Assembly: GCF_041956535.1 (NCBI RefSeq)
Contig: NW_027192197.1
Span: forward strand, 1,178,341 to 1,242,340
DNA: 64,000 nt
Reading direction: 5' to 3'
Source of the DNA: Calcarisporiella thermophila CBS 279.70
Lineage: Eukaryota; Fungi; Calcarisporiellomycota
Positions 41,154 to 61,483 of the stretch are shown here, piece by piece. The translations under genes and the position numbers were made by a program. The notes under the pieces were generated by a model that was not told the DNA's origin, did no database searches, and saw only the letters and a program-made list of their open reading frames with translations. How positions within the stretch are numbered: the first letter of the stretch is position 1; each line of letters begins with the position of its first letter.

Positions 41154-41558
41154 ATGGTAATTTATAGTGTAACGGTCTTCATCCTTTTTCTCTCTGCTGT
41201 TACAGTATCTGCTGTTCCACAGCAAGATTTTTCACAACACCAATTAACGGAGCATGCAACTGAGGGCTTATATGGTGGTGTGAATGGTTACGAAAATGAG
41301 CTGAGCAAACGTGACGTAAGAATAGGGGGCAATAACATGGTGGAAGGGGATCAGCAGATAGGAATGGTGAAGTATCCTTTTGATGGAGTGGTTGTGAAAA
41401 GCTGCTAACTCAAATACCATTAGAATAAGATTGACAAAGCAGCGAGTAAAGAAAGTGGCTCCGGTAGCTTGAACCAGAATATTCGTAACGAAGAATCAAA
41501 GAGTGCTCCGGCCCAAACTTCCCCGAGTGCGACTCCTTTCATCAATTCACTGTCATGA
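41154..41558 (+). CDS. Small secreted protein A (115 aa) carrying the shared N/Q/G-rich module plus a short S/T/P tail; exons 41154-41366, 41424-41558
   Basis: Signal peptide MVIYSVTVFILFLSAVTVSA; KR site; intron GT 41367, branch GCTAAC, TAG 41423; mature part DVRIGGNNMVEGDQQIGM|NKIDKAASKESGSGSLNQNIRNEESK...SLS*. Confidence 0.8.
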
Positions 41559-43563
41559 ATATCGAAAAGTGCGTAGTTTTTGGGTTCAGCTGTCGAGGTT
41601 ACCTGTCATTGACATTGCTTTGGTGGCATTTTCAGTTACCTCCCTAATATTAGCTAGGACGTGTCGCCATAAATTTTATTATTTCTATCCAGTGCTGTCT
41701 TTGACGTCAAAATAGAACGAACAGCTAATATACATATTCGATAACTCATATCGACCTCTCAAGCTTGAAATTGCTCATTTTAGCATTCTTTATTCATTAT
41801 AAGTAGAATGGGGAGGCAAACTGGATTTGAAGCAACCAAAACATCAAAAATCAAACACGATTATTATACCCATATTGCTTTCTTATGCAGTATACTTGTG
41901 AGCTATTCATGATCGCCTACTATATGTATATTCGGGCATCTTTAATCCTATTGATTCTAGTTGCAATTTATGGCCATGCTAAGCCATGTAGCATATATCA
42001 CGTTAATCAATGATGGTCAATTGTTTTGCATTGGTCGCTCGAACGGCTGGAAAATATTGGACGCGCTAATCTACGAGTATTCTTGTGATTTTCGCGCTCT
42101 GCTGAAAAAAGCTGCGTACATGCTGTAATTGCATATGTACCTTGCTTGGTTATTTAGCTAAAATTATATCTGTTGCACATCTTTGATAGCAGAGGTAAGG
42201 TGGATGGTCGAGATGGCCTCAAATTCTCCAAGTTTGATACATGCATGAACATTGGAGTGATGGCTATGGCTTCGAAATAAATTGGTAACTCGTGCATGTT
42301 GCCCTTTTCTAGTAACTATGCCCGAAGTTTCTGGGGCTTGGAATTGCAGGGGACAAAGCACCCTGACTCTGACCATGACCAGAAAGCACAATGGCTCACT
42401 GAGTCTATTATGAGTTTAAATTGGATATCGCTCCTGTATTCTAAGCATATCAAGTCCTCCCCCATTCTAATTTTCTCATCCTGTCTATCCGATGACCTCA
42501 GCATTGTCACCCCATCTCCGCTAGCAGCAGATCCGAGTAGCAGTTCATTCCGCCCTTACCAGATTCCATTTGCTATAAGCTCATTGTCGGGTGGATTACA
42601 TTAAGTATTAAGATGGTCAAGCATACTACAAAAGGGTTAAGTTAGTAAGATACTACTGGACATACTTTGTACCTTTATTTTACTCTCCACTTTGGCTAAG
42701 CAGTATTCCAGTTATCCAAGTGTAATCTACTGTTGGATAGAGGGAAATTCTCCTTGGAAAAATAATTGAGGTTGGGAAAGGACAGGGTGCCTTAGTATAC
42801 AAGACAGAAGCTTTTTTTTGGGGAGGGGGCTAAAGTTTGTCCATAAATACAAATATTGGCTTAGCGTGCTGTCTTTTATTTCTTGTCAAATTCTAATGCG
42901 TATAAGCTTTTCTCTGGATATGGAAAGCTAGTATCGCCCCTTATCATCACTTAACTTTGAATTAGGTTTAATTCCAATTTGTGCCTCGGAACACAAATTT
43001 CTTGCTCTCATAATGCACGCCTCTTGAGGATAAGCTTTCATATCCCAAAAACCAAAAGGGTGATGTCTCTGCAAATGATCGAGTCAGTGTTGTATAGACG
43101 GCACTTGAAGATAAGTGTCTAAGCGGGTCCCCAAGCGTCTTCGATAGATTGTGCACTACTTCAGCTTTTCCAAGGAAGCAAACGAAGAAGCTTCAGAGAA
43201 CCAATCGTTGACAAGGTACTGATCCGATAGAAACAAGGGAGCTAGCCAAACCAGGGGATTGTATATTGGATATATTCATAGGAATGCTTGTCAGCAGCAA
43301 TATCGAGTCGTCTCTCAGGATAGCCAATAGAAAATGTCGTCCATTAAAGCTCTGTTAGAGAAAAGCAATGAGGAACGTGAAGGGAGGGGGAAGAGAGGAC
43401 GCGAAAAAAATAGAACATGCCAGAGCATAAAAACAATATAAACTGTGTCAAACTCTATGCTTTTTCTTTTAATATATAAATAAAAAGACAAATAAACAAG
43501 CAAATAAATAAAGGGTGTTTATAAACTATACAGCCCGACCGGTATTTTTTTTTTCATCTAGGA

Positions 43564-44314
43564 CTACTCGCGCGTGTACTTTTGGATCACCTCTTTGATC
43601 TCTGGGTCGGATGCATTGGCGAAGGTGTTCAAGAGGAAGGTGCGGTTCAAGAGAGCAAAATCATTGAAGTCGAAGGCAGGGGACGTGGTGGTTCCGATCA
43701 AGGCATAGTCCTCCTTAGCGATCTCGCCCTCGGGATACATGGCAAAGTAGATATTGGTACGAATCAGATGCTGGATCCTGCCCACGCTCGGGTTACTGCT
43801 GAGGCGGATTTTGGTCAAAGTCTGCTGCTTAGGGTCCAGCTCTAGGACAACAAGCGGAACGGTGCCAACATAGTAGTGCAAAAGTTCCTCCGACACGGTA
43901 AGAATGTGGAATGCGGAGAAGTTGGGGACATCCAGGAGGAAATACTACCGTGGAAACGGGTGAGAGGAGGATTTAGGCATGGGCAGAGTTCACAAGAGCG
44001 CGCCGATGTCGCCCATGAGGGAAGGAAATGGGAATACTTACGATGGCGGTGGCAAGATTGCGGACCTTTGGCTTGCCCTCCGCATCATTCACGGCGGTCG
44101 TGGAGGGATCCGGGTAAGTCAGGCTGCTGAGTGAGAAGGTTCTATTGTCGCGGTAGGACTCGGCGTAGAATCCGCCTTCGGGATGCGGGGTCATGTTGTA
44201 GACCTTGGTGAGCTCTTCTACCGTGGGGATTTGCTCATGCAATCGCTGTGCAATTGTTGTGCCCAACATGGCTGAGACGAGGGAAAAGAGAAAGAGGAAT
44301 TTCGCGGCCTTCAT
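43564..44314 (-). CDS. Secreted DUF985/Cupin_5-family cupin (exons 44314-44042, 43944-43564)
   Basis: Signal peptide MKAAKFLFLFSLVSAMLGTTIA; motifs PHPEGGFYAESYR, TAI|YFLL, SAFH, EELLHYY, PAFDFNDF; several N-x-S/T sequons. Confidence 0.8.
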
Positions 44315-45817
44315 GATGAGGGAGGGAGCAAGTCTGGTAAGAGGAGAGTCTGGGTGGCTGTACAAGAACAAACAAGAAGACTTTCGATCTGTGTGGTTAG
44401 GTTTTATAGTGTCGCTTTGTTTGAAGTGGCCCGATTTCAAACTTAATATAGATGCGGGAAGCACCCCGATTGGAGATGGAACAAACGGCTGCCGGACTCG
44501 CGCATATCCCAAACCGAGCTGGGGACGGAATGCGGTGGCAGGTTCCGCGCGGCTTTGGATCGCAAGTCTCCTCCCGCGAGGCCTCGAATGTTTTTGGGGC
44601 CGGTTCAGTATCACCTGGGCAACAACGTTTAAGCGGGAGGGGAGAGGAAGAGGGGAGGGCATCCAAGGTCCTCATGGCGTGAGAATGGCGCCTAGGCCTT
44701 ATGGGGGTGAGTCGATAGCATAAGCATGCTCAAGGCGACTCAGGAGTCCACACCATGGTTACAAATGCACGCGCTTCATAATCCACTTGGATGCTATGGC
44801 TCTGTGTAATGGCTGCTCCACAAAGTTGAGCACAAGCCTTCCAGCTCCTTGCGCCCGGCTGACAAGGAGCCCAAAGCAACTCGGCCCGGGTTTGGAAACG
44901 ATCAAAGCGCTGAGTTTGATTTCGGGGCCGAGCGCCAGAGCTGAACTCTCTTCTCAATAAGCCCTGAGAGCCACACCGCTCACAAGCGATCGGGAGAAAA
45001 ACGAGAGCGCACTCAGCAGGAAGTTTATTTAGGACGCAGGCTTCCAGGAATTTTCCGCCGTCAAAGTCGGTCTGGATTAGGCTCTGATAAATTTGATAGG
45101 GGCTGGCAGGCGTGAGTAGAAGCCCCCTTAGACGGATATGGATTTCGAGGAGGTCGCGTCATACCTCCATGAAATTTTAGGTTGGGTTCACACACAAACC
45201 TAGAATGTTTCAAGCTCTATGTTTTCCTTGGTACAAAACCCCAGGCCTGTTTTTTTCTCTGTTTCATCCCCTTTCGGCAGTTTGTTTTTGTTTGCTATCT
45301 TATAAAGCAAACCACGGGCTCTCGTCAATACAGCAGATTGCTCTCTTTCTTCTCTGCCTCCTTTCTTTATGTTTTGCACAGCTACTTGTTCCCTGTTGTT
45401 TATCGGGTTAATTTTATCCATACACCTAATATAATCACCTCCCAACCGTCTAGTCTTCGATTGCTACAATATCTTTCCTTTTCCTTGACGAGAGCCTGCA
45501 ACCTACTTCGGCTGCTGTTCGCCTTCTTTTTTTTTTTGGGCCGAGGGTAACGTAGCTGGGTGCTCCAGTTGATTTTACCCGTTATTTATACGGACCTTCT
45601 TTAATTTTAGAGCTAGGAAACGATACAAAAATATAATATATATTTTTTTCGGTACCTCTCCCCCACACTGGTGCTCGTCTGTCAAGTGCTATTCTGTAAT
45701 AGTAGCGGTGGATCGCTAGTAGTAATTCGCTTGCGCTTGGTTCCAGTGGCCGGCTATCTCTTTATCCTTATATCTCTGTACATCACTAGCTGTTATTAAC
45801 ATAATCATTACGTAGCC

Positions 45818-47086
45818 ATGGGATCACCGACAGATTCCGCTACAAGCAGCTTTGCCCTGACGAACGAGGAGGCTGGCATCATCATGGCAATGGCCAAACC
45901 ACTTAACGTGGTTGCAATCAGCTCAGCCTCGCTCGTCGTTGCTTTTCTACTGATGCTTCGATTCACGAATCCTCAGATAACTAATCGAGTGTCGTTGCGG
46001 TTGGCTTTCTCGATCTCATTGGTGGACATCATATATCACTCGGGCCAACTTCTCGGGCTCACTAACAACAACGGCACTTCGTTCTTCTGTGGCTTCGGTG
46101 TGTGGATCTTTCTCTTTACCTCGCTCTTAGCAACCTTCCTCACCACCATGATCGCCGTCAACCTGCAGCTTGTCATTGTCCACCACAAGTATAGAACACG
46201 CCAGCTCGAAAAATGGTACTACATCATCTCCGTGCTTGCCGCTCTAGCCATCTCTTTACCCCCCTACTTTACCGGCTATCTTGGATACAACGCCGCAGAG
46301 AAGACGTGCTGGTTTGTCGGGCACGATACTCACGCCTTCCTTGTGCAGATCTTCATCTACTTGTTCTGGATCTATTTATGCGTCATCATCTGCATCGTCG
46401 CGGTCTCACTCGTGATTTACCAGCTCCTAAAAGCCCGCAATACGCTGCAAGAAATCCAAGGCATGGCTGGGAATGCATCCGGCGTCAGTCATAAAAGCGT
46501 CACCGTCACCAACCCAGTCTCCGAGAAGGTGTCACGCTGTGTGCGGCGCATCATTCTCTATCCAGTCGTGCCTATATTTGTGCAAACCCTAGTGTTGGCC
46601 TCCGAGGCCCAGATTTACGCCGAAAAACACATCCTCTTCTGGTTATTTGTGGTGTCATATATCGGAACAAGTTCCCAGGGATTGATCAACGCTATTATAT
46701 TCTTCGGCTTTGACCCCGTGATTCTCTCGGTGTTTGACTCTGTCAAGCTTGGGTGGTCCTCTTCTCGGCGTAAAAAGAAGGCCTTTTTCAGTTCGAGCGA
46801 CACTGGCGACTATAGGTCACGTAATTCTGGAAAATTCACGCAAATTCTAGATACAAGTGTGGAAGGAGACGAAAATTCAGATGGTGACGGCCTGCACGCT
46901 ACTTATATTCAGATGAATGAGAGCAGCCAATTTACCCAACCTGGTTTCCCACACGCAGGGAATGTCTACCATCAGCAGTCGCCGTCGGGGAATCGGCGAC
47001 CGGCTTCAGAAGCATGGCAGTCTGGTGTTCCTAGGAGCTCGGAGGATGGCTCCCTCAACTCGGAAAAACTTGTACGGCTACTTTAG
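45818..47086 (+). CDS. 7-TM G-protein-coupled receptor, cAMP-receptor-like/Git3-related
   Basis: Seven hydrophobic segments; RVSLRL, IAVNLQL, LEKWYY, GYN...CW, RIILYPVVP, SQGLINAIIF...DP; S-rich cytosolic tail. Confidence 0.85.
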   Translation: MGSPTDSATSSFALTNEEAGIIMAMAKPLNVVAISSASLVVAFLLMLRFTNPQITNRVSLRLAFSISLVDIIYHSGQLLGLTNNNGTSFFCGFGVWIFLFTSLLATFLTTMIAVNLQLVIVHHKYRTRQLEKWYYIISVLAALAISLPPYFTGYLGYNAAEKTCWFVGHDTHAFLVQIFIYLFWIYLCVIICIVAVSLVIYQLLKARNTLQEIQGMAGNASGVSHKSVTVTNPVSEKVSRCVRRIILYPVVPIFVQTLVLASEAQIYAEKHILFWLFVVSYIGTSSQGLINAIIFFGFDPVILSVFDSVKLGWSSSRRKKKAFFSSSDTGDYRSRNSGKFTQILDTSVEGDENSDGDGLHATYIQMNESSQFTQPGFPHAGNVYHQQSPSGNRRPASEAWQSGVPRSSEDGSLNSEKLVRLL

Positions 47087-49892
47087 GTAACTACAATCTA
47101 TGTCATAGGTTTTGTTTGGAGAGTTGATTAAGCCTTCGTTCCCCTCCTGTCCTAAATAATAGATTGTCTCATGGTGTTCCCTATATACCATATATCTTCC
47201 TGTGAAGTACTGGTTAAAAAAATTGTCAGGGGGCCTATGAAAATGTTTTATTTATCCTTGTCAATAATAGTGTGTAAATATTGAATACATAGATTCACAT
47301 CTACTCCTCATTTAGCTTATATCATTTCGATACTTGGGGTTAACCATTTTGATGTGATTCGAAAACTCTTTTATTAAGTCTTTCTGTTTATCACTTTAGC
47401 TTATCTTATTGTTATTATTTTTCCCTCAATAATTATGATGTTTATCTGAGGGGGAGAATTCCCCTTGAAATCCTGCGATAATTTTTTGACTACCTACTAG
47501 AATCAAATTCTCAAACAAATCAAGTATTCCGCTGGATTTAATTGGACAAAGCCCTCCTCTAAACCCTCAAATCCAATTCAGTATTCTATAAACACATCAA
47601 TCTAACAAAAACATCTGTTGAAATTATACGAGAACAAGATCTCCTGCTGGAGTTGCACTAAACTCATGAGAAGTGTAGCAATTAAAAAATATGGCACTTA
47701 TTTTAAAACATTTTCCGTCACAAAGAACATGAAGCTATACATTTATTCAGGTTCATTTATTTTTATTCTCTTCACCTATTACTTTTGTCGCAATACCTGA
47801 TGCACTTGTGGTGATGTACTCAGCAATACTTGCAATAATCTGGGGTAAAATACTCGCAAGCATTATATAATTAAAGGTAAGTATAATTCGGATTACAATT
47901 AAAATAAGATCGCTCGTTATTTCGAACGATCTCATCACGTTTTGTAGTCTATTCTTTGGAGAAACGAAGGCAGATTGTGGAGTCAATGTTTCCGTGAATA
48001 AGCAAGATCCAGCTTACTACAATGTTATTTGGTTAAATTTTGAACTTCAATTACCCATCACAACATTGCCAGCCAGAAAGCATGCACCTCTCCTGCTGTA
48101 AGTGCAATTGGTTTCTCACCCCTAAAAAATCGATTCGGATTCCCAGTGGTTTCTCTGTCAAGGCTGATATATTCTCCGTCGAATCAGTAAAATGCTTGAT
48201 AAAGTTCCCAAGTTTGAATGCACGTATAGCTAGACCAAGCGTGAGAGCTTCATCAGTCCTTGCACACCAATTCATGAGATTTAGTATTCATTTTGAATAT
48301 CTATATGCATCAAAATGCATACTCAGCAATCGGAATGGTTAATTGCCAAGCTATGCTTATATTTAATCACTTTTCTAGAGGACGCCTTGCTTCGAAAGCA
48401 GGGCTGAAAGCCTAAGCTCTTTGATCACATCACCAGAGTTGAACCATGATCATAAAAGGAGGAGGATAATTGTAAGAAAATTTAATTTTAATGACATATA
48501 ACATGCACTTCTTCATATGCATTCTAATTTAATTCAGTTTAAAAGCATTCATCCATAGTATGGATGTCTTGATATACTCTACTCACAGATGGGCTACTGG
48601 TCTTGCACGCACTACATCCAATTCTCTAAGGCTCCTGGATATTGTTTGATGTTCAATATACGGGTTAAAGTTGACTAATAATATTAATTTACCTTTTTTA
48701 TCCACATTTCTGTTTGGTTGGATACTTGATAGATACATTTTGATGCATTTGAAAGATGCTAAAAAAATCATGCGATGATATCGCAGCCATAAAGGAGATA
48801 TCAATTATTAAAGAAGAGGGGAATTACCTACGGAATTAAGGTACTGTATATCAAAAGGATGTATCCGATTTCTGAATATCAAGTGGGGGTCCTAGTTAGC
48901 CTCTACCAAGTTCACTGGTTTCAAAGGGGTCTCACTTTTGATTTTTAAAAAGAGGTTGATTAAAGAACAGTCTTTTTGCTTCATGTATCAAAAGTTTATT
49001 AAAATCGTAACATTATATTGCTATTAAATGATTTAGAACTTGGGAAGTTGATTTTCCTTTTACTGTCGCAAAAAGTTTTTTTTTCAGCTGTAGAACAAAC
49101 AACCTATTTGGAAAGTATGGGTTTGACAAAGCTGATGTATCAAATACGCCAAATACTTTTGCAAATCTACAGGATATTAAGAAAGTCAGCTTATAATAGT
49201 GCCATATTTTTCTTGGCAATACTTTGCAAAATCATAAATGGTAATGTTAGTGGTAATGGTAATTATAGAGGGCAAACGCAAATACCAGTTTAATTGCGAA
49301 TTGGTAAAGTATTAGCTAGATTTTTTTTTTCTTGGTGTAGAATATCAGGAGATGTATTAGGAGTAGAATTCAAGGAGAAATCTCAATTTTGAATATCCCT
49401 ACAATCTAGGCAGTGACGCAATACTAATAAACTTCTTTCATTTTTAATACAAAATGCTGCAGTTTAAAGGCAATAAATACAATTTGATCTAATAACATCT
49501 TAAACATTATTTTTTTTAAAGATATTTTTAGTAGTAAAACCTTTTAAATTCAGTTGAGACATGGTTTAGATTTCCGATAGTTTTTTCCAGGTATTTGAAA
49601 TTTAAGACGATCAGTCTTGCCTAGAGTTTTGCTGAGACCCCCCTAAAATTTTTTAAGGTTTTCCATCGTGAGAAACTGTTTCTTATGAGCTGACATATGA
49701 ATTTCCAAGAAATTTGATAATTTTCTCATTCGTCACCTCAATAACATAAGCATTTTACAAAGTTTTTGAGAGTATTTGCCAGTTTTTAAGATTCATGCTA
49801 AGAGTTTAGCTTTCGTAAATTATATAAACCTCCAATTTCTCGTCAATTAACGATTAAGTCCAATTCAATTTAACTCTACACTTTATCTAATC

Positions 49893-50873
49893 ATGAAGAT
49901 CTGCACACTAATTTCTTTGGCTACCCTTTATTTCGTGACTTTCTTCGATGCCGCGAACTTTGTTCAAGCTAACCGTATCCTTGTAGAGCGACAAATTAAA
50001 ATCAATGGAAATAACAGTGTTGAAGGAAATCAACAAATTGGAGAGGTAACTTTTTTTGGAAAAAATTCTCCAACTCATGAGTTGTTTAACTGTGTTTGAA
50101 CGAATGATTAGAACAATATTACAAACTCAACTAATAGTGGAGACAATAGTGGTTCTTTGAATCAGAATATCAATGCGGGAAATGTTGATGAAGATGCGGA
50201 AGGGGGCGGAGATGAGGTATCAAACCAAGCATCAAATCAGACTCAAGTTAGGTCGACTGGAGACACTTATAGGAATTTTGCAGCACTAATGGAAGCATGC
50301 AAACAAGACAACACTATTAAGTACTCCATTGACGCACAGGAAAGAGGAGGGAATATGATTGTTCTGGGTATCCACGGTGGAAATATTGAATTGGGAACGT
50401 CCGAAATAGTTAGAGCCATTGCAAATTATGCAGATAAGCCGCAGCTACCATACTATTTGTTTGAGTCCCATGTCTCACCGAGTAACAACCAAAGGAGATA
50501 TAATTTACATATAACGTCAACACGTTTTGACGAACCTAATGCGATCGAAATGACCACTAGGAAAACTACTGTCATCTCTATCCACGGCGCAGCTAACGAA
50601 ACTAATATCGTATATATGGGAGGATTAGATGAAGATTTGAGCAGGAAAGTCGGAGGTCAGTTAAGAAACGCAAATCTCAGTTTCAAGTTTGAGGTCAACT
50701 TCAACCCACCACGTGGGTTGACTGGGAAAGAGCCGAACAATATCGTGAACAAGGGTCGGACTAGAAAAGGCACACAGCTGGAAATAACCCGGGGGATGCG
50801 AAGAAGGCTTACTCGGAATCCTACGGATCTTTCGAAATTTGCATTGGCAATTAGAAAGGCTTTAGACCAATAG
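49893..50873 (+). CDS. Secreted protein B (304 aa): shared N/Q/G-rich module fused to a poly-gamma-glutamate hydrolase domain (PghP/DUF867 family); exons 49893-50045, 50112-50873
   Basis: Signal peptide; ER site; QIKINGNNSVEGNQQIGE|NNITNSTNSGDNSGSLNQNI; acidic linker; then DTYRNFAAL, IHGGNIELGTSE, LHITSTRFDEP, ISIHG, YMGGLD, GKEPNNIVN, GTQLEIT. TATATAAA at 49821. Confidence 0.88.
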
Positions 50874-51118
50874 TAGCTTTGTATCCTCGAATTACTGTTC
50901 ATTATGAAATTATAAAGAGTAAATAGGATAATTAATCGAACCATAATTTGTTGTTTGCTAATTAAATTGTAGGAATAATATAAAAAATAAAATTTTAAAC
51001 ATGAATAGTATCCCTTAGTCTAACTCAAAGTTACTGGATTATCATAAAATTTTTAAATATAGTATTGTATTTACCTATAAATATGGTAAAACCATTAAAA
51101 TTTTCTCAGTGAAAACAA

Positions 51119-51313
51119 ATAGATAACATATGGAAGTAAAAGGATTGAGAGCTTTAGCGATTCCCGAGATAGTTTTTAAATTTTAACGTATTTTTTCGTA
51201 CTTTTATTACAGTATATTGGGAGAAGTTTACAAATTATAGTAATATTGTAGGAAAATTATAGGAAAACGCGAACGTTCTCAATCCCTTCTATATGCTCCT
51301 ACACGTTATCTAT
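51119..51313. repeat. Degenerate ~195-bp fold-back (MITE-like) element
   Basis: Left end atagataac...ggattgaga...ttagcgattcc mirrors the reverse complement of the right end (atagataac...ggattgaga...ttcgcgttttcc) with mismatches and indels. Confidence 0.4.
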
Positions 51314-52516
51314 ATGATATCGCACGGTAGACTTTTTGTAGGGCTACATCTAATAATATCTATCTTCTTGAATTACTTTATTTTAGTTTCAATTAAATAG
51401 AGCTTATTTCTAAAATATTTTTTGCATATTTGCATATGCCAATATTTTGTGTGATGTACTCATTGTGTTAGGCTAAATCAAGTTCTTTAAACATTTGGAA
51501 TATGGCTGAATATTTTAATTACTCCGGTATGAGAAATTAGTATAGCCTATAATCGTTTACCGCAAGGGCCAAGAAGTATAAAGAAGCCTGGATGAAACTG
51601 GCACTACTTACTTTAGCCTGAAAGTTTATCCTAAGAGAATAAAGTAATAGTCAATGACTATTCGGTATGATTTATTACTTTGCCCTTAAAAAACAAACCA
51701 TGGGAATTGAATCCAAAAATACAACTTTCAATAGTGTCATTCCTAATCTCATGTCATTACATTATTTGATAATCTAGTTTGAAATTTGTGAATCTCCAAA
51801 TTTTTGGTAGTAAAAGGGAGTTTGATATCCTAAATCCAGAGATCTTCTAGATTGATATTATAAACTTTTTGCCAATTAAAAAAGGCTAATGTATCATGTG
51901 AATCAACGCCAGAGCAACCTAATGAGATCGCCAAGATTTTCCCAAATAACTAAACAAACACAACAATATCTAGATCTTTGTATACCTGGTAAAGGCTCAT
52001 ACTCTAAATATACAACATGTATAGCTTGTTATACATATATATCTCTAAAATTCCTCAACTTGTAAATCTAGTGTCTAAGAGGTAAATAAGTGTTTAGTAG
52101 TTGTTTTTTTTAGGATATTCAACAGTTTGAAATGGATGAAAGCATGTAATAAGGCTCTTCGACAATTATTAATCCCAACTTCATATTCCAAGAAAAATAC
52201 TATTCTGTAATTTCAAACTGCCTTATTTTGTTTTGAGGTGGTAAATACAAAGTCGTGTCTGGAAACGATCCACGATAAGCCCATAGCTATTTACTTCGGT
52301 TTGAGGCAAAAGTGAAACTTTAATAGGCTATTCTCTTGGTGAAAACTAACAAATTAAAGAGAATTGCCATAATAGACTAATTAAAATTTTGCGCGTATCC
52401 GTAGTATATCAAGAGTGTATAAAAAGGACACATTTTACAATCATTTTTTATTCATTACCAGATCAACTTTTCAATTCAATTTCAAGTATACAACAACGTC
52501 TCTATTTTTGCAGAAA

Positions 52517-53084
52517 ATGAAGTCCGTTATTCTTTCAGTTGCAGTTCTCTTCGCCACCATTGCCAGTTCTCAGGCCGAACCGGTTCTTAAACACATAGGT
52601 GAACGAGGCATTAATGTCGGTGGGAGTAATAGTGTTGGCAGTAATCAACAAATGGCCGATGTAAGTCCATTATTATAAGATAAATCTTTTATCGGCAGAG
52701 CGACTAACCAGTTTGATATTGTAGAATACAAACCAGAATTCTAACAACAGCGGTACTGGTGCAGGTAGCTTGAACCAGAACATGGTCGGTTGTGCCAACT
52801 GTCCTCCGCAACAGACAATTACTATAACTAGATCTTGCTATCCACAACCTACTGTTACCGTCACTAAGAGCTTCGTGTCCACTTATACGCCACCCCCACA
52901 AGTAATCACGGTAACTAAAACCGTTGCTTCACCTTGCCCTACCCCACCGACCTATCCCACCAAACCTGCATGCCCGCGCTCTTATTGCCCACCCTGTCCA
53001 CGCCCTAACAACAATGTCGGAAATGGCATTTTGAATCTCGGAAATGGGGGTCGGGATGGTAGTCTCATTAGGATTTTTAGTTAA
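52517..53084 (+). CDS. Secreted protein C (167 aa): shared N/Q/G-rich module + Cys/Pro/Thr-rich stalk + N/G-rich C-terminus; exons 52517-52660, 52725-53084
   Basis: Signal peptide MKSVILSVAVLFATIASSQA; ER site; GINVGGSNSVGSNQQMAD|NTNQNSNNSGTGAGSLNQNM; intron GTAAGT 52661, branch ACTAAC, TAG 52724. TATAAAAA at 52418. Confidence 0.85.
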
Positions 53085-54566: not shown

Positions 54567-55274
54567 ATGAAGAGAGTTTGGTGTTTCTTGCTGACACATG
54601 TACTAGTTATTATGTCTACAACAGGCGCCAACTTCCGTTCCCGCTCCATTGGCATGGTTGTCTTTCCTGGATTTGAAGTACTTGATGTCTTTGGACCTTT
54701 AGAATATTGGAATATACTCCCGCTCATTGCACCTACTGGTTTGAGTGTTTCGATTATCTCTCACAAGGTTGGACCAGTGAGTTCGATCCCACCAATTAGA
54801 CCTGATGCAATTGGACAGAGTATCTTAGCAACTCACTCTTTTAGTAACCCTCCCAATCTCGATATTCTCATAGTACCTGGAGGTATTGGCACACGGACAA
54901 TGATCAATGACACCGTTCTTCTCAATTTCATCAGGGATACCTATCCCACATTGGAGTATTTGGTGACCGTATGCACAGGTTCGGCGTTAGTTGCGAAAAC
55001 TGGCCTATTAGATGGTAAAAATGCGACATCCAACAAAAAATCGTTCGATTGGGTTATGCAACAAGGACCTAACGTTAAATGGATCCGCCGTGCTCGCTGG
55101 GTTGAAGACGGAAACATCCTCACCAGCTCAGGTGTCCAAGCGGGTATGGACATGACCAATTATCTCATTGGGAAGCTATACAGCGAAGAGATAGCGAAGC
55201 AGGTCAGCGATCGCATGGAATACGCACCTCACACTGATCCCACGTGGGATCCCTTTGCTGACCAAACGAAATAG
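54567..55274 (+). CDS. DJ-1/PfpI (ThiJ) family protein, isonitrile-hydratase-like subgroup, intronless
   Basis: FPGFEVLDVFGPLE, DILIVPGGIGTR, nucleophile elbow TVCTGS, GLLDGKNATSNK, RWVEDGNILTSSGVQAGMDM, MEY...DPFA. The start is either Met1 (hydrophobic leader) or Met16. Confidence 0.9.
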   Translation: MKRVWCFLLTHVLVIMSTTGANFRSRSIGMVVFPGFEVLDVFGPLEYWNILPLIAPTGLSVSIISHKVGPVSSIPPIRPDAIGQSILATHSFSNPPNLDILIVPGGIGTRTMINDTVLLNFIRDTYPTLEYLVTVCTGSALVAKTGLLDGKNATSNKKSFDWVMQQGPNVKWIRRARWVEDGNILTSSGVQAGMDMTNYLIGKLYSEEIAKQVSDRMEYAPHTDPTWDPFADQTK

Positions 55275-60268: not shown

Positions 60269-61483
60269 ATGAAATTATCTGGCTATGCAGTTTGGTTTAC
60301 CTGCATAATACTTATTGTATCCTCAATAACTCAAGCAACCCCTCTTAAGAGAGAGATAAGAGGAGTAGGACCCAATGGATTGGTAGATAAGGAAGCGGCA
60401 AATAGTCCAGAAGCGATTAGGAGAAATGAAGAATTGAATGCCATATTTAGGAAAAAGCATCCAGAGTTTTTCCAGAAAGCGACCCCCCATGAGCAAAAGA
60501 AAATGGAAAGTTGGATCACTAAGATAGAGGATATCGCAGTTAGATATGGTCTTCCAGCAGTAGGGAGTTTCTTAGGAGAGCTTATTGATCCTGCAGGAGG
60601 TGGTGTAGCAGGAGGATTATTGGGAGATACCTTAGCGAGATACGTGGCTGTGAAATTTGGATTGGAAGAACACTTTGACACATCCCTACCGGTTGTCGGT
60701 CGCATCGGAAAATTAGCAAAAGCATTGGAGGAAGGGGCTGGTGTTGTTGGCGAATTGCCAAAGGGTTCGGCTACCCCAGGAAAAGGAGCGACAGCACCTG
60801 AGAATAACGAAGTCCCAGTAAATCCAGAAGAAAATGAAGTAATTCCCCCGGGTGAAAAGAACGGAAACGAAGCAACTGGTAATACTGAAGTAGAAGGAGA
60901 GGCTTGCTTAAGGAAGAGGGGCTCTGGTTCTCTTAATAGGCGGCAGATGAACTGTAATCCAAATCAAGCAGGACCGAGCGGAAATCGACCCAATAAAGCA
61001 CGACCGGGCCAATCGGTTGAAGCCAAGAGTGCCCTTAAGACCTACTTTCAAACCGGGTACAAGAACCTAATATTTCGAGCTTCACAAAGTGCCCACGAAA
61101 TGATAAACCACATGCGCGATTTTGGCCTAACTCCAAATGAACCAACAGATCTTCCGGCCAATATCGAGTTGAATAATAGGAGCTATACTACGGCCGTGCG
61201 TAGCTATCTTGAGAATCTCAAATCGAATCCTGGAAATGTAGCTTATTTTGAAGGCAGATATCAAACCGGGACGAAACTGTTGAAAGGAGGCAAAACTGGA
61301 CCAAGTCAAGTCGTGAGTGCACGGTTCATAGTCGAGGATGGCGGAAAAAAAGGTATAAAGCTGTTTGCAATCGGAAAAGATGGAAATAGAGCAAATGAGC
61401 TATTGTATGCCGGAAATATATCGAGAACTAAACTTGGAATTCTTGAGGAAAAAGGCGAAGTTTGGTTTGGAAAGAAACCGTAG
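60269..61483 (+). CDS. Secreted toxin-like precursor (404 aa): signal peptide, glycine-zipper region, acidic linker, Cys-dibasic-Cys loop, putative colicin-D-like RNase C-terminus
   Basis: Intronless ORF with signal peptide and KR site; GSFLG...GGGVAGGLLG; LPVVGRIGKLAK; CLRKRGSGSLNRRQMNC; basic C-terminal domain with HMRDFGL. TATA-like run at 60141. The ORF is secure; the function is inferred. Confidence 0.7.
   Translation: MKLSGYAVWFTCIILIVSSITQATPLKREIRGVGPNGLVDKEAANSPEAIRRNEELNAIFRKKHPEFFQKATPHEQKKMESWITKIEDIAVRYGLPAVGSFLGELIDPAGGGVAGGLLGDTLARYVAVKFGLEEHFDTSLPVVGRIGKLAKALEEGAGVVGELPKGSATPGKGATAPENNEVPVNPEENEVIPPGEKNGNEATGNTEVEGEACLRKRGSGSLNRRQMNCNPNQAGPSGNRPNKARPGQSVEAKSALKTYFQTGYKNLIFRASQSAHEMINHMRDFGLTPNEPTDLPANIELNNRSYTTAVRSYLENLKSNPGNVAYFEGRYQTGTKLLKGGKTGPSQVVSARFIVEDGGKKGIKLFAIGKDGNRANELLYAGNISRTKLGILEEKGEVWFGKKP

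Follow-up and report, generated by a model that had tools for sequence, protein, structure and literature searches.

Here we describe a 38-residue protein module that is so far confined to one deep-branching, heat-loving fungus, Calcarisporiella thermophila, has not been described before and, judged from its sequence, is probably a lineage-specific functional unit rather than a pro-piece. In the predicted gene products, this module stands by itself, is repeated in tandem with Lys-Arg sites in between, or precedes Cys/Pro/Thr stalks or one enzyme, and the tag probably helps secreted proteins to assemble at, or adhere to, the cell surface. Three carriers, genes A, B, and C, lie where the original prediction had placed them, all on the + strand of a 64,000-nt window (the whole stretch of DNA analyzed) that contains no further module copy.

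Gene A (exons 41154–41366 and 41424–41558; 115 aa; public model VTP21DRAFT_10796) encodes a signal peptide, a propeptide ending in Lys-Arg, and module residues 1–18 (41313–41366) in exon 1, followed after a 57-nt phase-0 intron (41367–41423) by module residues 19–38 (41424–41483) and a 24-aa Ser/Pro/Thr tail in which a GPI-type end is absent. Gene B (exons 49893–50045 and 50112–50873; 304 aa; VTP21DRAFT_10800) starts with a signal peptide, a short propeptide ending in Leu-Val-Glu-Arg, and module residues 1–18 (49992–50045), and continues beyond a 66-nt phase-0 intron (50046–50111) with module residues 19–38 (50112–50171), an acidic Gly/Asn/Gln linker predicted to be disordered (50172–50261), and a predicted poly-gamma-glutamate hydrolase domain of the PghP/PghL type (PF05908; 50262–50873). 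The stretch linking module to enzyme lacks a dibasic site. Gene C (exons 52517–52660 and 52725–53084; 167 aa; VTP21DRAFT_10801) combines a signal peptide, a propeptide ending in Ile-Gly-Glu-Arg, and module residues 1–18 (52607–52660) with, past a 64-nt phase-0 intron (52661–52724), module residues 19–38 (52725–52784), a 99-aa Cys/Pro/Thr stalk (7 Cys), and an Asn/Gly-rich end of which no second copy was found in the genome.

The three introns are of the GT..AG type, sit after module residue 18, and each contain a YTAAY branch-point-like site 19–26 nt from the acceptor. Their splice sites, first proposed from the DNA, are identical in the public gene models: the public C. thermophila proteins match the predicted A, B, and C lengths exactly, with the module contiguous over the splice junction, and two intronless paralogues (contigs C26 and C28) encode the module in one uninterrupted piece of genomic DNA. 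Aligned without gaps, the modules share 21/38 (A–B), 14/38 (A–C), and 20/38 (B–C) residues, identities beyond anything seen in 100,000 shuffles per pair (maxima of 13, 13, and 15, respectively). The proposed homology of the module in A, B, and C is thus confirmed by identities beyond all shuffles, a common intron position, and selection (see below), which also rule out a chance low-complexity match as the source of the likeness.

A search of this genome, suggested along with the original prediction, yielded at least 18 module genes with 21 modules on 15 contigs, the partners being stalks, short tails, and a single enzyme. The family includes genes encoding little besides the module, one Kex2 repeat precursor with four modules, nine stalk proteins of the Cys/Pro/Thr type, and the two intronless paralogues. 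Products made almost solely of module are those of the C19 gene (3-aa tail), C41, C11, and C36, the C12 gene holds four copies with a Lys-Arg site at each of the three junctions, and the remaining 17 genes, A, B, and C among them, hold one each. A hydrophobic N-terminal stretch was seen in A, B, C, and their paralogues from hydropathy and reading of the sequences, while none of the 17 C-termini tested was GPI-like. A, B, and C are not mutual closest relatives by identity, nor are they grouped in the family tree, in which such a grouping is not rejected either (p-AU 0.10). The linked genes had been taken for one system; they are instead three of at least 18 dispersed paralogues, which rules out a self-contained three-gene cluster. 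Likewise, a display or assembly system with an enzymatic payload is an extrapolation, since enzymatic cargo occurs in only 1 of the 18 genes, i.e., gene B. Dispersal by means of a symmetric exon was rejected because the intron sits inside the module, with only the C12 tandem fitting a 0-0 exon duplication.

The module evolves under purifying selection (pN 0.33 vs pS 0.84; pN < pS in 136/136 pairs), and that of gene B does so against every paralogue. Signal peptides, propeptides, and introns of the family have diverged to background, the introns being unrelated among genes and the module flanks ~10% identical. The 21 variants average 52% identity, 17 of them are exactly 38 aa long without gaps, Gln36 is invariant (21/21), Gln15 is found in all 17 full-length modules, and Pro is restricted to positions 7 and 29. 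Conserved positions are occupied by Gly, Asn, Gln, and beta-branched residues, with aromatic or charged ones almost absent. Conservation alternates with period 2 (p about 0.01–0.02) and hydrophobicity has a period of 6 over residues 1–30 (p 0.008; several lags tested, uncorrected); the sequence pattern is compatible with beta-arch assembly. An internal two-rung pseudo-repeat did not reach significance (of 28 lags, lag 6 was best at p 0.036); for an HRAM-type pair of pseudo-repeats of about 21 aa, lags 22 and 18 gave p 0.067 and 0.16. An AlphaFold model of the single module (pLDDT 57, no strands) is uninformative on the fold and is not counted as support.

We next consider processing. A Kex2-type site with Arg at P1 precedes 20 of the 21 module copies, and P4 is Leu, Ile, Val, or Phe in 15 of these 20 sites, matching the published Kex2 cleavage rule (PMC8528282). 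The genome encodes six proprotein-convertase P-domains. These data agree with the predicted Kex2-type exposure of the module at the mature N-terminus, and by their hydrophobic N-terminal signal and the Arg-ending site before the module, its carriers are predicted to be secreted.

No module relative outside C. thermophila was detected in a profile search of 1.84 billion protein representatives, which returned ten C. thermophila proteins plus two others, long and of repetitive sequence, whose partial matches (E about 8e-5) were treated as compositional noise. Word-index protein searches gave no candidate or a paralogue only, scans of metagenome and prokaryote contigs gave no confirmed relative, and no usable match was obtained in Pfam (at E 10), PDB sequences, or ESM Atlas clusters, in agreement with the initial reading, in which no named domain was recognized. 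The resemblances to RHIM and curli claimed alongside did not hold, and for HET-s PFD no Pfam or PDB match was obtained. The RHIM/PP core reads (I/V)-Q-(I/V/L/C)-G, the curli CsgA repeat Ser-x5-Gln-x-Gly-x2-Asn-x-Ala-x3-Gln, and the left-handed beta-helix hexapeptide tandem [LIV]-[GAED]-x2-[STAV]-x. Each was found in 0/21 modules, the curli repeat even with a loosened pattern and the hexapeptide despite the period-6 hydrophobic spacing. With the PIR core pattern (as in PMC12359137) also at 0/21, membership in all four families was rejected.

The gene B enzyme was confirmed as a predicted poly-gamma-glutamate hydrolase: its C-terminal domain scores 146.9 bits against PF05908 (gathering cut-off 22; Pfam E 6e-43), its fold matches 21DC, 3A9L, and 5ONJ in Foldseek (E about 1e-14, TM 0.80–0.83 by target), and the predicted zinc ligands His/Glu/His (H139, E144, H209), catalytic Glu (E275), and substrate His/Thr/Ser (H184, T186, S187) are all intact. 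It thus shares the fold and the zinc-binding and catalytic residues of PghP/PghL (YndL) hydrolases (PF05908; 3A9L, 5ONJ), but is fungal, intron-containing, and module-fused, and lacks the C-terminal extension of its closest relatives, which are from Thermoactinomycetaceae. The enzyme is separated from its bacterial relatives, which are devoid of the module, by 1.09 changes per site, whereas the branch length of its module from the family centre is about 0. Most likely, a hydrolase domain that came from Bacillota joined exon 2 of a family member already present, where it would have taken over the signal peptide, module, and intron; PghP-like genes have already been noted in a few eukaryotes, two fungi among them (PMC4497714). 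In the AlphaFold model, the module does not pack against the enzyme (pLDDT < 50 for residues 44–99), and an inhibitory pro-domain of the hydrolase was rejected. Because the module appears to have been kept since the fusion, the enzyme is plausibly held at the surface, with bacterial poly-gamma-glutamate as its presumed substrate there.

How might the module act? We tentatively favor a self-assembling beta-arch surface unit, a reading that falls a little short of an even chance and fits the alternating conservation, fixed length, and invariant Gln. Specifically, Kex2-type cleavage would expose the module as the mature N-terminus, and the monomer, presumably disordered, would fold when it meets further copies, giving a stacked beta-arch (cross-beta or beta-solenoid). 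In that stack, Ile/Val at positions 2, 4, 10, 16, 21, 34, and 38 and Asn/Gln at 8, 14–15, 19, 26, and 36 would point inward or form ladders, and variable charged residues would lie on the outside. Hyphae or spores would thereby gain a coat or matrix that keeps the non-GPI stalk proteins at the surface, in analogy to repellents, chaplins, or chorion paralogues. The fuller version, i.e., a Kex2-activated amyloid tag co-assembling ~18 proteins into a hetero-polymeric coat that displays an acquired anti-capsule or anti-slime hydrolase, is unlikely; if true, it would constitute a natural eukaryotic amyloid display system. With at least three hydrophobin matches in the genome there is no coat gap to fill, and replacement of hydrophobins by the module family was rejected.

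Several known systems share part of this architecture. Ustilago maydis Rep1 repellents and Hum3 are Kex2-processed surface peptides with imperfect repeats of 31–55 residues, which Hum3 fuses to another domain, and amyloid has been demonstrated for Rep1 alone (PMC4617103). Signal peptide and Kex2 sites are common to both and the C12 gene has a Rep1-like build, but no sequence similarity was detected, and most of the 18 genes keep one module on a stalk or enzyme. The C12 gene likewise matches the build of KEPs (PMC6339444, PMC7329392), defined by a signal peptide and ≥3 repeats of 8–100 aa between Kex2 sites (PMC7329392), whereas the 17 single-module genes, A, B, and C included, lack the repeats and are not KEPs; reuse of a KEP peptide as the N-terminal domain of many proteins lies outside that definition. 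Amyloid signalling motifs (HET-s PFD/HRAM, PP, RHIM) are cytosolic and NLR-linked (PMC7889193). Like the module, these motifs and curli/FapC repeats are short, rely on Gly/Asn/Gln and beta-branched residues, and occur on unrelated domains; unlike HRAM, module carriers have signal peptides and no NLR or HeLo-type effector domain. In Streptomyces chaplins, many secreted paralogues share a conserved assembly domain with variable arms, and short forms are found next to long ones. To our knowledge, neither chaplins nor chorion proteins carry enzyme cargo. Lepidopteran chorion proteins are likewise numerous secreted paralogues with one conserved assembly domain, variable arms, and both short and long forms (PMC13252134), and for both systems the likeness to the module family is one of analogy, without homology.

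Other readings must be weighed against self-assembly. An unlikely one is a wall-anchoring tag that does not polymerize: by binding glucan or chitosan, or through a PIR-like covalent link at the invariant Gln, it would fix stalks and hydrolase alike. Yeast Pir proteins (PF00399) indeed have the same overall build, i.e., a pre-pro region with a Kex2 site, a Gln motif, a Ser/Thr region, and a Cys-rich end, and no GPI (PMC12359137), and the constancy of Gln36 and Gln15 points the same way. However, the module spans 38 residues with another conserved pattern and no PIR core in any copy, PF00399 had no match in the genome in a search run without a positive control, and a fixed register of this length exceeds the need of a linear reactive site. 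A tag with nothing to anchor, as in the C19 product or the four released C12 copies, is also hard to explain.

We consider a ligand or recognition peptide improbable: here the module, free (C12, C19) or on stalks, would fold on a protein partner (receptor, self/non-self, or microbial target), to which the fusion would also direct the hydrolase. Kex2-released peptides are often signals or effectors (PMC6339444, PMC7329392), and a module disordered alone, strongly conserved by position, and exposed N-terminally would be in line with this, but the near lack of aromatic and charged residues among conserved Gly, Asn, Gln, and beta-branched ones is unusual for a receptor ligand, the variants average only about half identity, and no partner gene was identified. 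Least probable, in our view, is a pro-domain, secretion leader, or hitch-hiker, in which the 5′ end of a secreted gene with high expression was taken up again many times, and the module, at least that of B, is either removed or neutral. The intron within the module and the joining of cargo inside exon 2 are as expected for such 5′-end reuse, only one carrier has an enzyme, and a basic cluster directly follows the module in the C20 product, with a basic pair ≤15 residues from it in C10 and C28. Yet the module comes after the cleavage site, not before it, gene B offers no dibasic site for its removal, and purifying selection acts on the B module while the surrounding signal peptides, propeptides, and introns are at background. 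That the module is a product in its own right is made more likely by the existence of module-only genes and of the four-module C12 precursor.

The module thus appears free as a peptide, repeated within a tandem precursor, and at the N-terminal end of stalk proteins and one enzyme. Should it self-assemble, its 21 naturally occurring variants would represent a new functional-amyloid motif of thermophilic origin, from which rules of stacking and cross-seeding could be learned and which could serve as a short display tag; an enzyme would then also have been recruited by a secreted assembly domain. Independent of amyloid, gene B is a probable case of a bacterial enzyme domesticated by fusion behind the signal peptide, module, and intron of a resident secreted gene. 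How non-GPI proteins are retained at walls is poorly known in Mucoromycota, and 38-mer peptides make this question testable. N-glycosylation sequons are present in 13 of the 21 modules, three of the sequons being in gene B; their total is no different from chance (22 observed, 22.2 expected), and glycans on them could hinder tight stacking.

All three predicted genes were recovered in the window on the + strand, at 41154-41558 (gene A), 49893-50873 (gene B), and 52517-53084 (gene C). A listing of GT..AG introns whose removal yields a single open frame confirmed phase-0 introns of 57, 66, and 64 nt, respectively, after residue 18 of the module, each with a branch-point-like site. The public models VTP21DRAFT_10796 (A) and VTP21DRAFT_10801 (C) cross the same junction, and the best match of B exon 2, VTP21DRAFT_10800 from C. 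thermophila (Mucoromycota), is 304 aa, i.e., the length of the spliced model. The junction is independently supported because paralogues on contigs C26 and C28 carry the module without an intron. That the three proteins share the module also held, with ungapped identities of 21, 14, and 20 of 38 residues reached by none of 100,000 shuffles for each pair among A, B, and C. Downstream of the module, these genes encode no dibasic site. The end of gene C (53006-53084, +) is an Asn/Gly/Leu-rich stretch with no second genomic copy.

The system is not limited to the three linked genes: searching the C. thermophila genome by protein, pattern, and profile identified at least 18 genes, carrying 21 modules and spread over 15 contigs, and the window accounts for just three of these modules. 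Cataloguing their C-terminal partners revealed an enzyme in one gene (B), tails of 3-24 residues in six (A, C11, C19, C36, C41, and C42b), Cys/Pro/Thr/Ser-rich stalks of 42-300 residues in nine, several with Cys-containing repeats, a basic Gln-rich tail in one (C28), and a four-module precursor with Lys-Arg sites between modules (locus L014, C12:33700-34620, minus strand). Every module copy in this precursor is intron-split, its inner exons being symmetric phase 0-0 units; it alone in the family has the KEP build, and it did not appear in the protein databases searched. Stalks are barely alike among themselves and have no Pfam match at family cut-off, and none of the 17 C-termini tested resembles a GPI signal. 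The C20 gene is described from its readable part, the rest reading N. By identity, A, B, and C are not each other's nearest relatives (B is nearest to C38, C26, and C10), and the 38-column module tree is a star in which their monophyly is neither shown nor rejected.

The intron sits at the homologous position in 18 of the 21 modules, is shifted three codons earlier in C19, and is absent from two. It was apparently lost twice: C28 (locus L052) lacks it while its sister C36 (L089; 100/100 support) retains it, and C26 (L021) is also without it. In the public protein P0022 (VTP21DRAFT_8934, contig C42), the donor lies 12 nt beyond the site used across the family, so that the module is lengthened internally by four residues; this is probably an annotation slip.

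We evaluated the distribution of the module with a 42-position profile, whose rows were restricted to database-returned spliced proteins, genomic exons, and the two intronless paralogues. Database queries came from the same three sources, and our own spliced translations served for alignment statistics only. Among 1.84 billion representatives, the profile matched ten C. thermophila proteins and, weakly, two repetitive sequences, and no relatives were found in Pfam, PDB, Atlas, metagenome, or prokaryote scans. This one-species distribution is a lower bound, since short genes split by introns often escape annotation and sequencing has hardly reached the fungus's near relatives. The module is an unnamed orphan unit whose range of uses is unusual.

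The predicted Kex2-type exposure of the module is supported family-wide by the residues at the putative cleavage site. Arg directly precedes 20 of the 21 copies, within Lys-Arg (11), Glu-Arg (4), Arg-Arg (2), Pro-Arg (2), or Gln-Arg (1), and in the exception, C41, Lys-Arg lies two residues further upstream. P4 is Leu, Ile, Val, or Phe in 15 of the 20 Arg-preceded modules, and these P1/P4 residues match the extended Kex2 rule (PMC8528282). Together with six proprotein-convertase P-domain matches in the genome, the Arg-ending site predicts that the module is the mature N-terminus and not a propeptide. A module-only gene (66 aa, C19:554575-554770) lies ~3.3 kb from one P-domain match (C19:558104-558436), which is broken by stops with an intron probable and is perhaps the KEX2 orthologue; this adjacency may be chance. 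The five other P-domain (PF01483) matches lie in long open frames (C5:1110032-1112179, C7:757755-759762, C17:258385-258645), where four of them form two closely spaced pairs on opposite strands, and would represent an expanded family of convertase-like or bacterial-type peptidases.

pN was lower than pS in all 136 full-length module pairs (means 0.33 vs 0.84, with saturation at synonymous sites), while flanks of 20 residues on each side share ~10% identity and intron sequences are unrelated. Module length is exactly 38 in seventeen copies. Positions 2, 4, 10, 16, 34, and 38 are hydrophobic in all or nearly all modules, and 21 commonly is; Asn/Gln dominate at 8, 14, 15, 19, 26, 35, and 36, and Gly at 6, 28, and 32. 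Gln36 is invariant (21/21), charges fall mainly at variable positions, and Pro is confined to 7 and 29. Without correction for the various lags that were tried, conservation showed an alternation of period 2 (p about 0.01-0.02) and hydrophobicity one of period 6 over residues 1-30 (p 0.008). This pattern resembles a strand-arc-strand unit, as judged from sequence; a two-rung pseudo-repeat was not significant, and AlphaFold gave a single module pLDDT 57 and no strands. Sequons occur at chance level, with their Asn at variable positions in full-length modules. The suggested resemblance to RHIM and curli failed both motif tests, and motif tests for PIR and beta-helix membership failed as well.

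By sequence and structure comparison, the C-terminal domain of B is a PghP/PghL-type poly-gamma-glutamate hydrolase of predicted activity, which keeps all residues reported essential (PMC6506827). PghP-like genes were noted earlier in a few fungi (PMC4497714). The B domain is closest to secreted proteins of Lihuaxuella and Thermoflavimicrobium (46-47% identity) and clusters with them (support 94/93); its branch is long and the sampling sparse, which leaves room for long-branch attraction. In these bacteria the signal peptide directly precedes the enzyme domain, without a module, and a C-terminal extension is present that B lacks. The simplest history would be that the enzyme domain was acquired horizontally and then fused into exon 2 of a gene of this family. 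Few copies match the consensus as closely as the B module (mean 21.9 of 38 identities, branch length about 0), yet its synonymous sites are far from those of all paralogues, so selection has preserved it. AlphaFold predicts a well-folded enzyme with module and linker unpacked, which offers no hint that the module acts as an inhibitory pro-domain.

We tentatively favor a reading in which Kex2 cleavage would expose the module, which would fold upon stacking and build or join a surface coat; this coat would hold the non-GPI stalk proteins as well as the one enzyme, hydrolase B, which could then strip bacterial poly-gamma-glutamate. Such action would liken the module to Ustilago Rep1/Hum3, and the family to chorion, where paralogue families have one common assembly domain; it is not homologous to either. 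The original, fuller claim of co-polymerised enzyme display appears unlikely. A PIR-like or lectin-like wall anchor acting through the invariant Gln has a precedent in carrier architecture (PMC12359137), but the PIR core is absent from the module, and we consider this explanation rather unlikely. That the module is a ligand or recognition peptide seems distinctly unlikely, and that it is a leader or hitch-hiker, improbable. Nor would the favored coat simply replace hydrophobins, since this fungus has them: three matches (PF01185) exceed the cut-off in this Mucoromycota genome, at C25:89122 and C18:373349-375051.

Elsewhere in the window, an intronless 436-aa FAD-dependent monooxygenase-like ORF (PF01494; 39100-40410) and a DUF985 cupin with an apparent N-terminal hydrophobic leader (PF06172; 43564-44314) lie on the - strand. 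On the + strand, an intronless 422-aa GPCR-like membrane protein (GPR_Gpa2_C match; 45818-47083) lies between A and B, an intronless ORF of the DJ-1/PfpI family (54567-55274), hydrophobic at its N-terminus, is possibly secreted, and an intact 404-aa secreted-looking ORF (60269-61483) carries Lys-Arg/Arg-Arg sites and a basic C-terminal domain.
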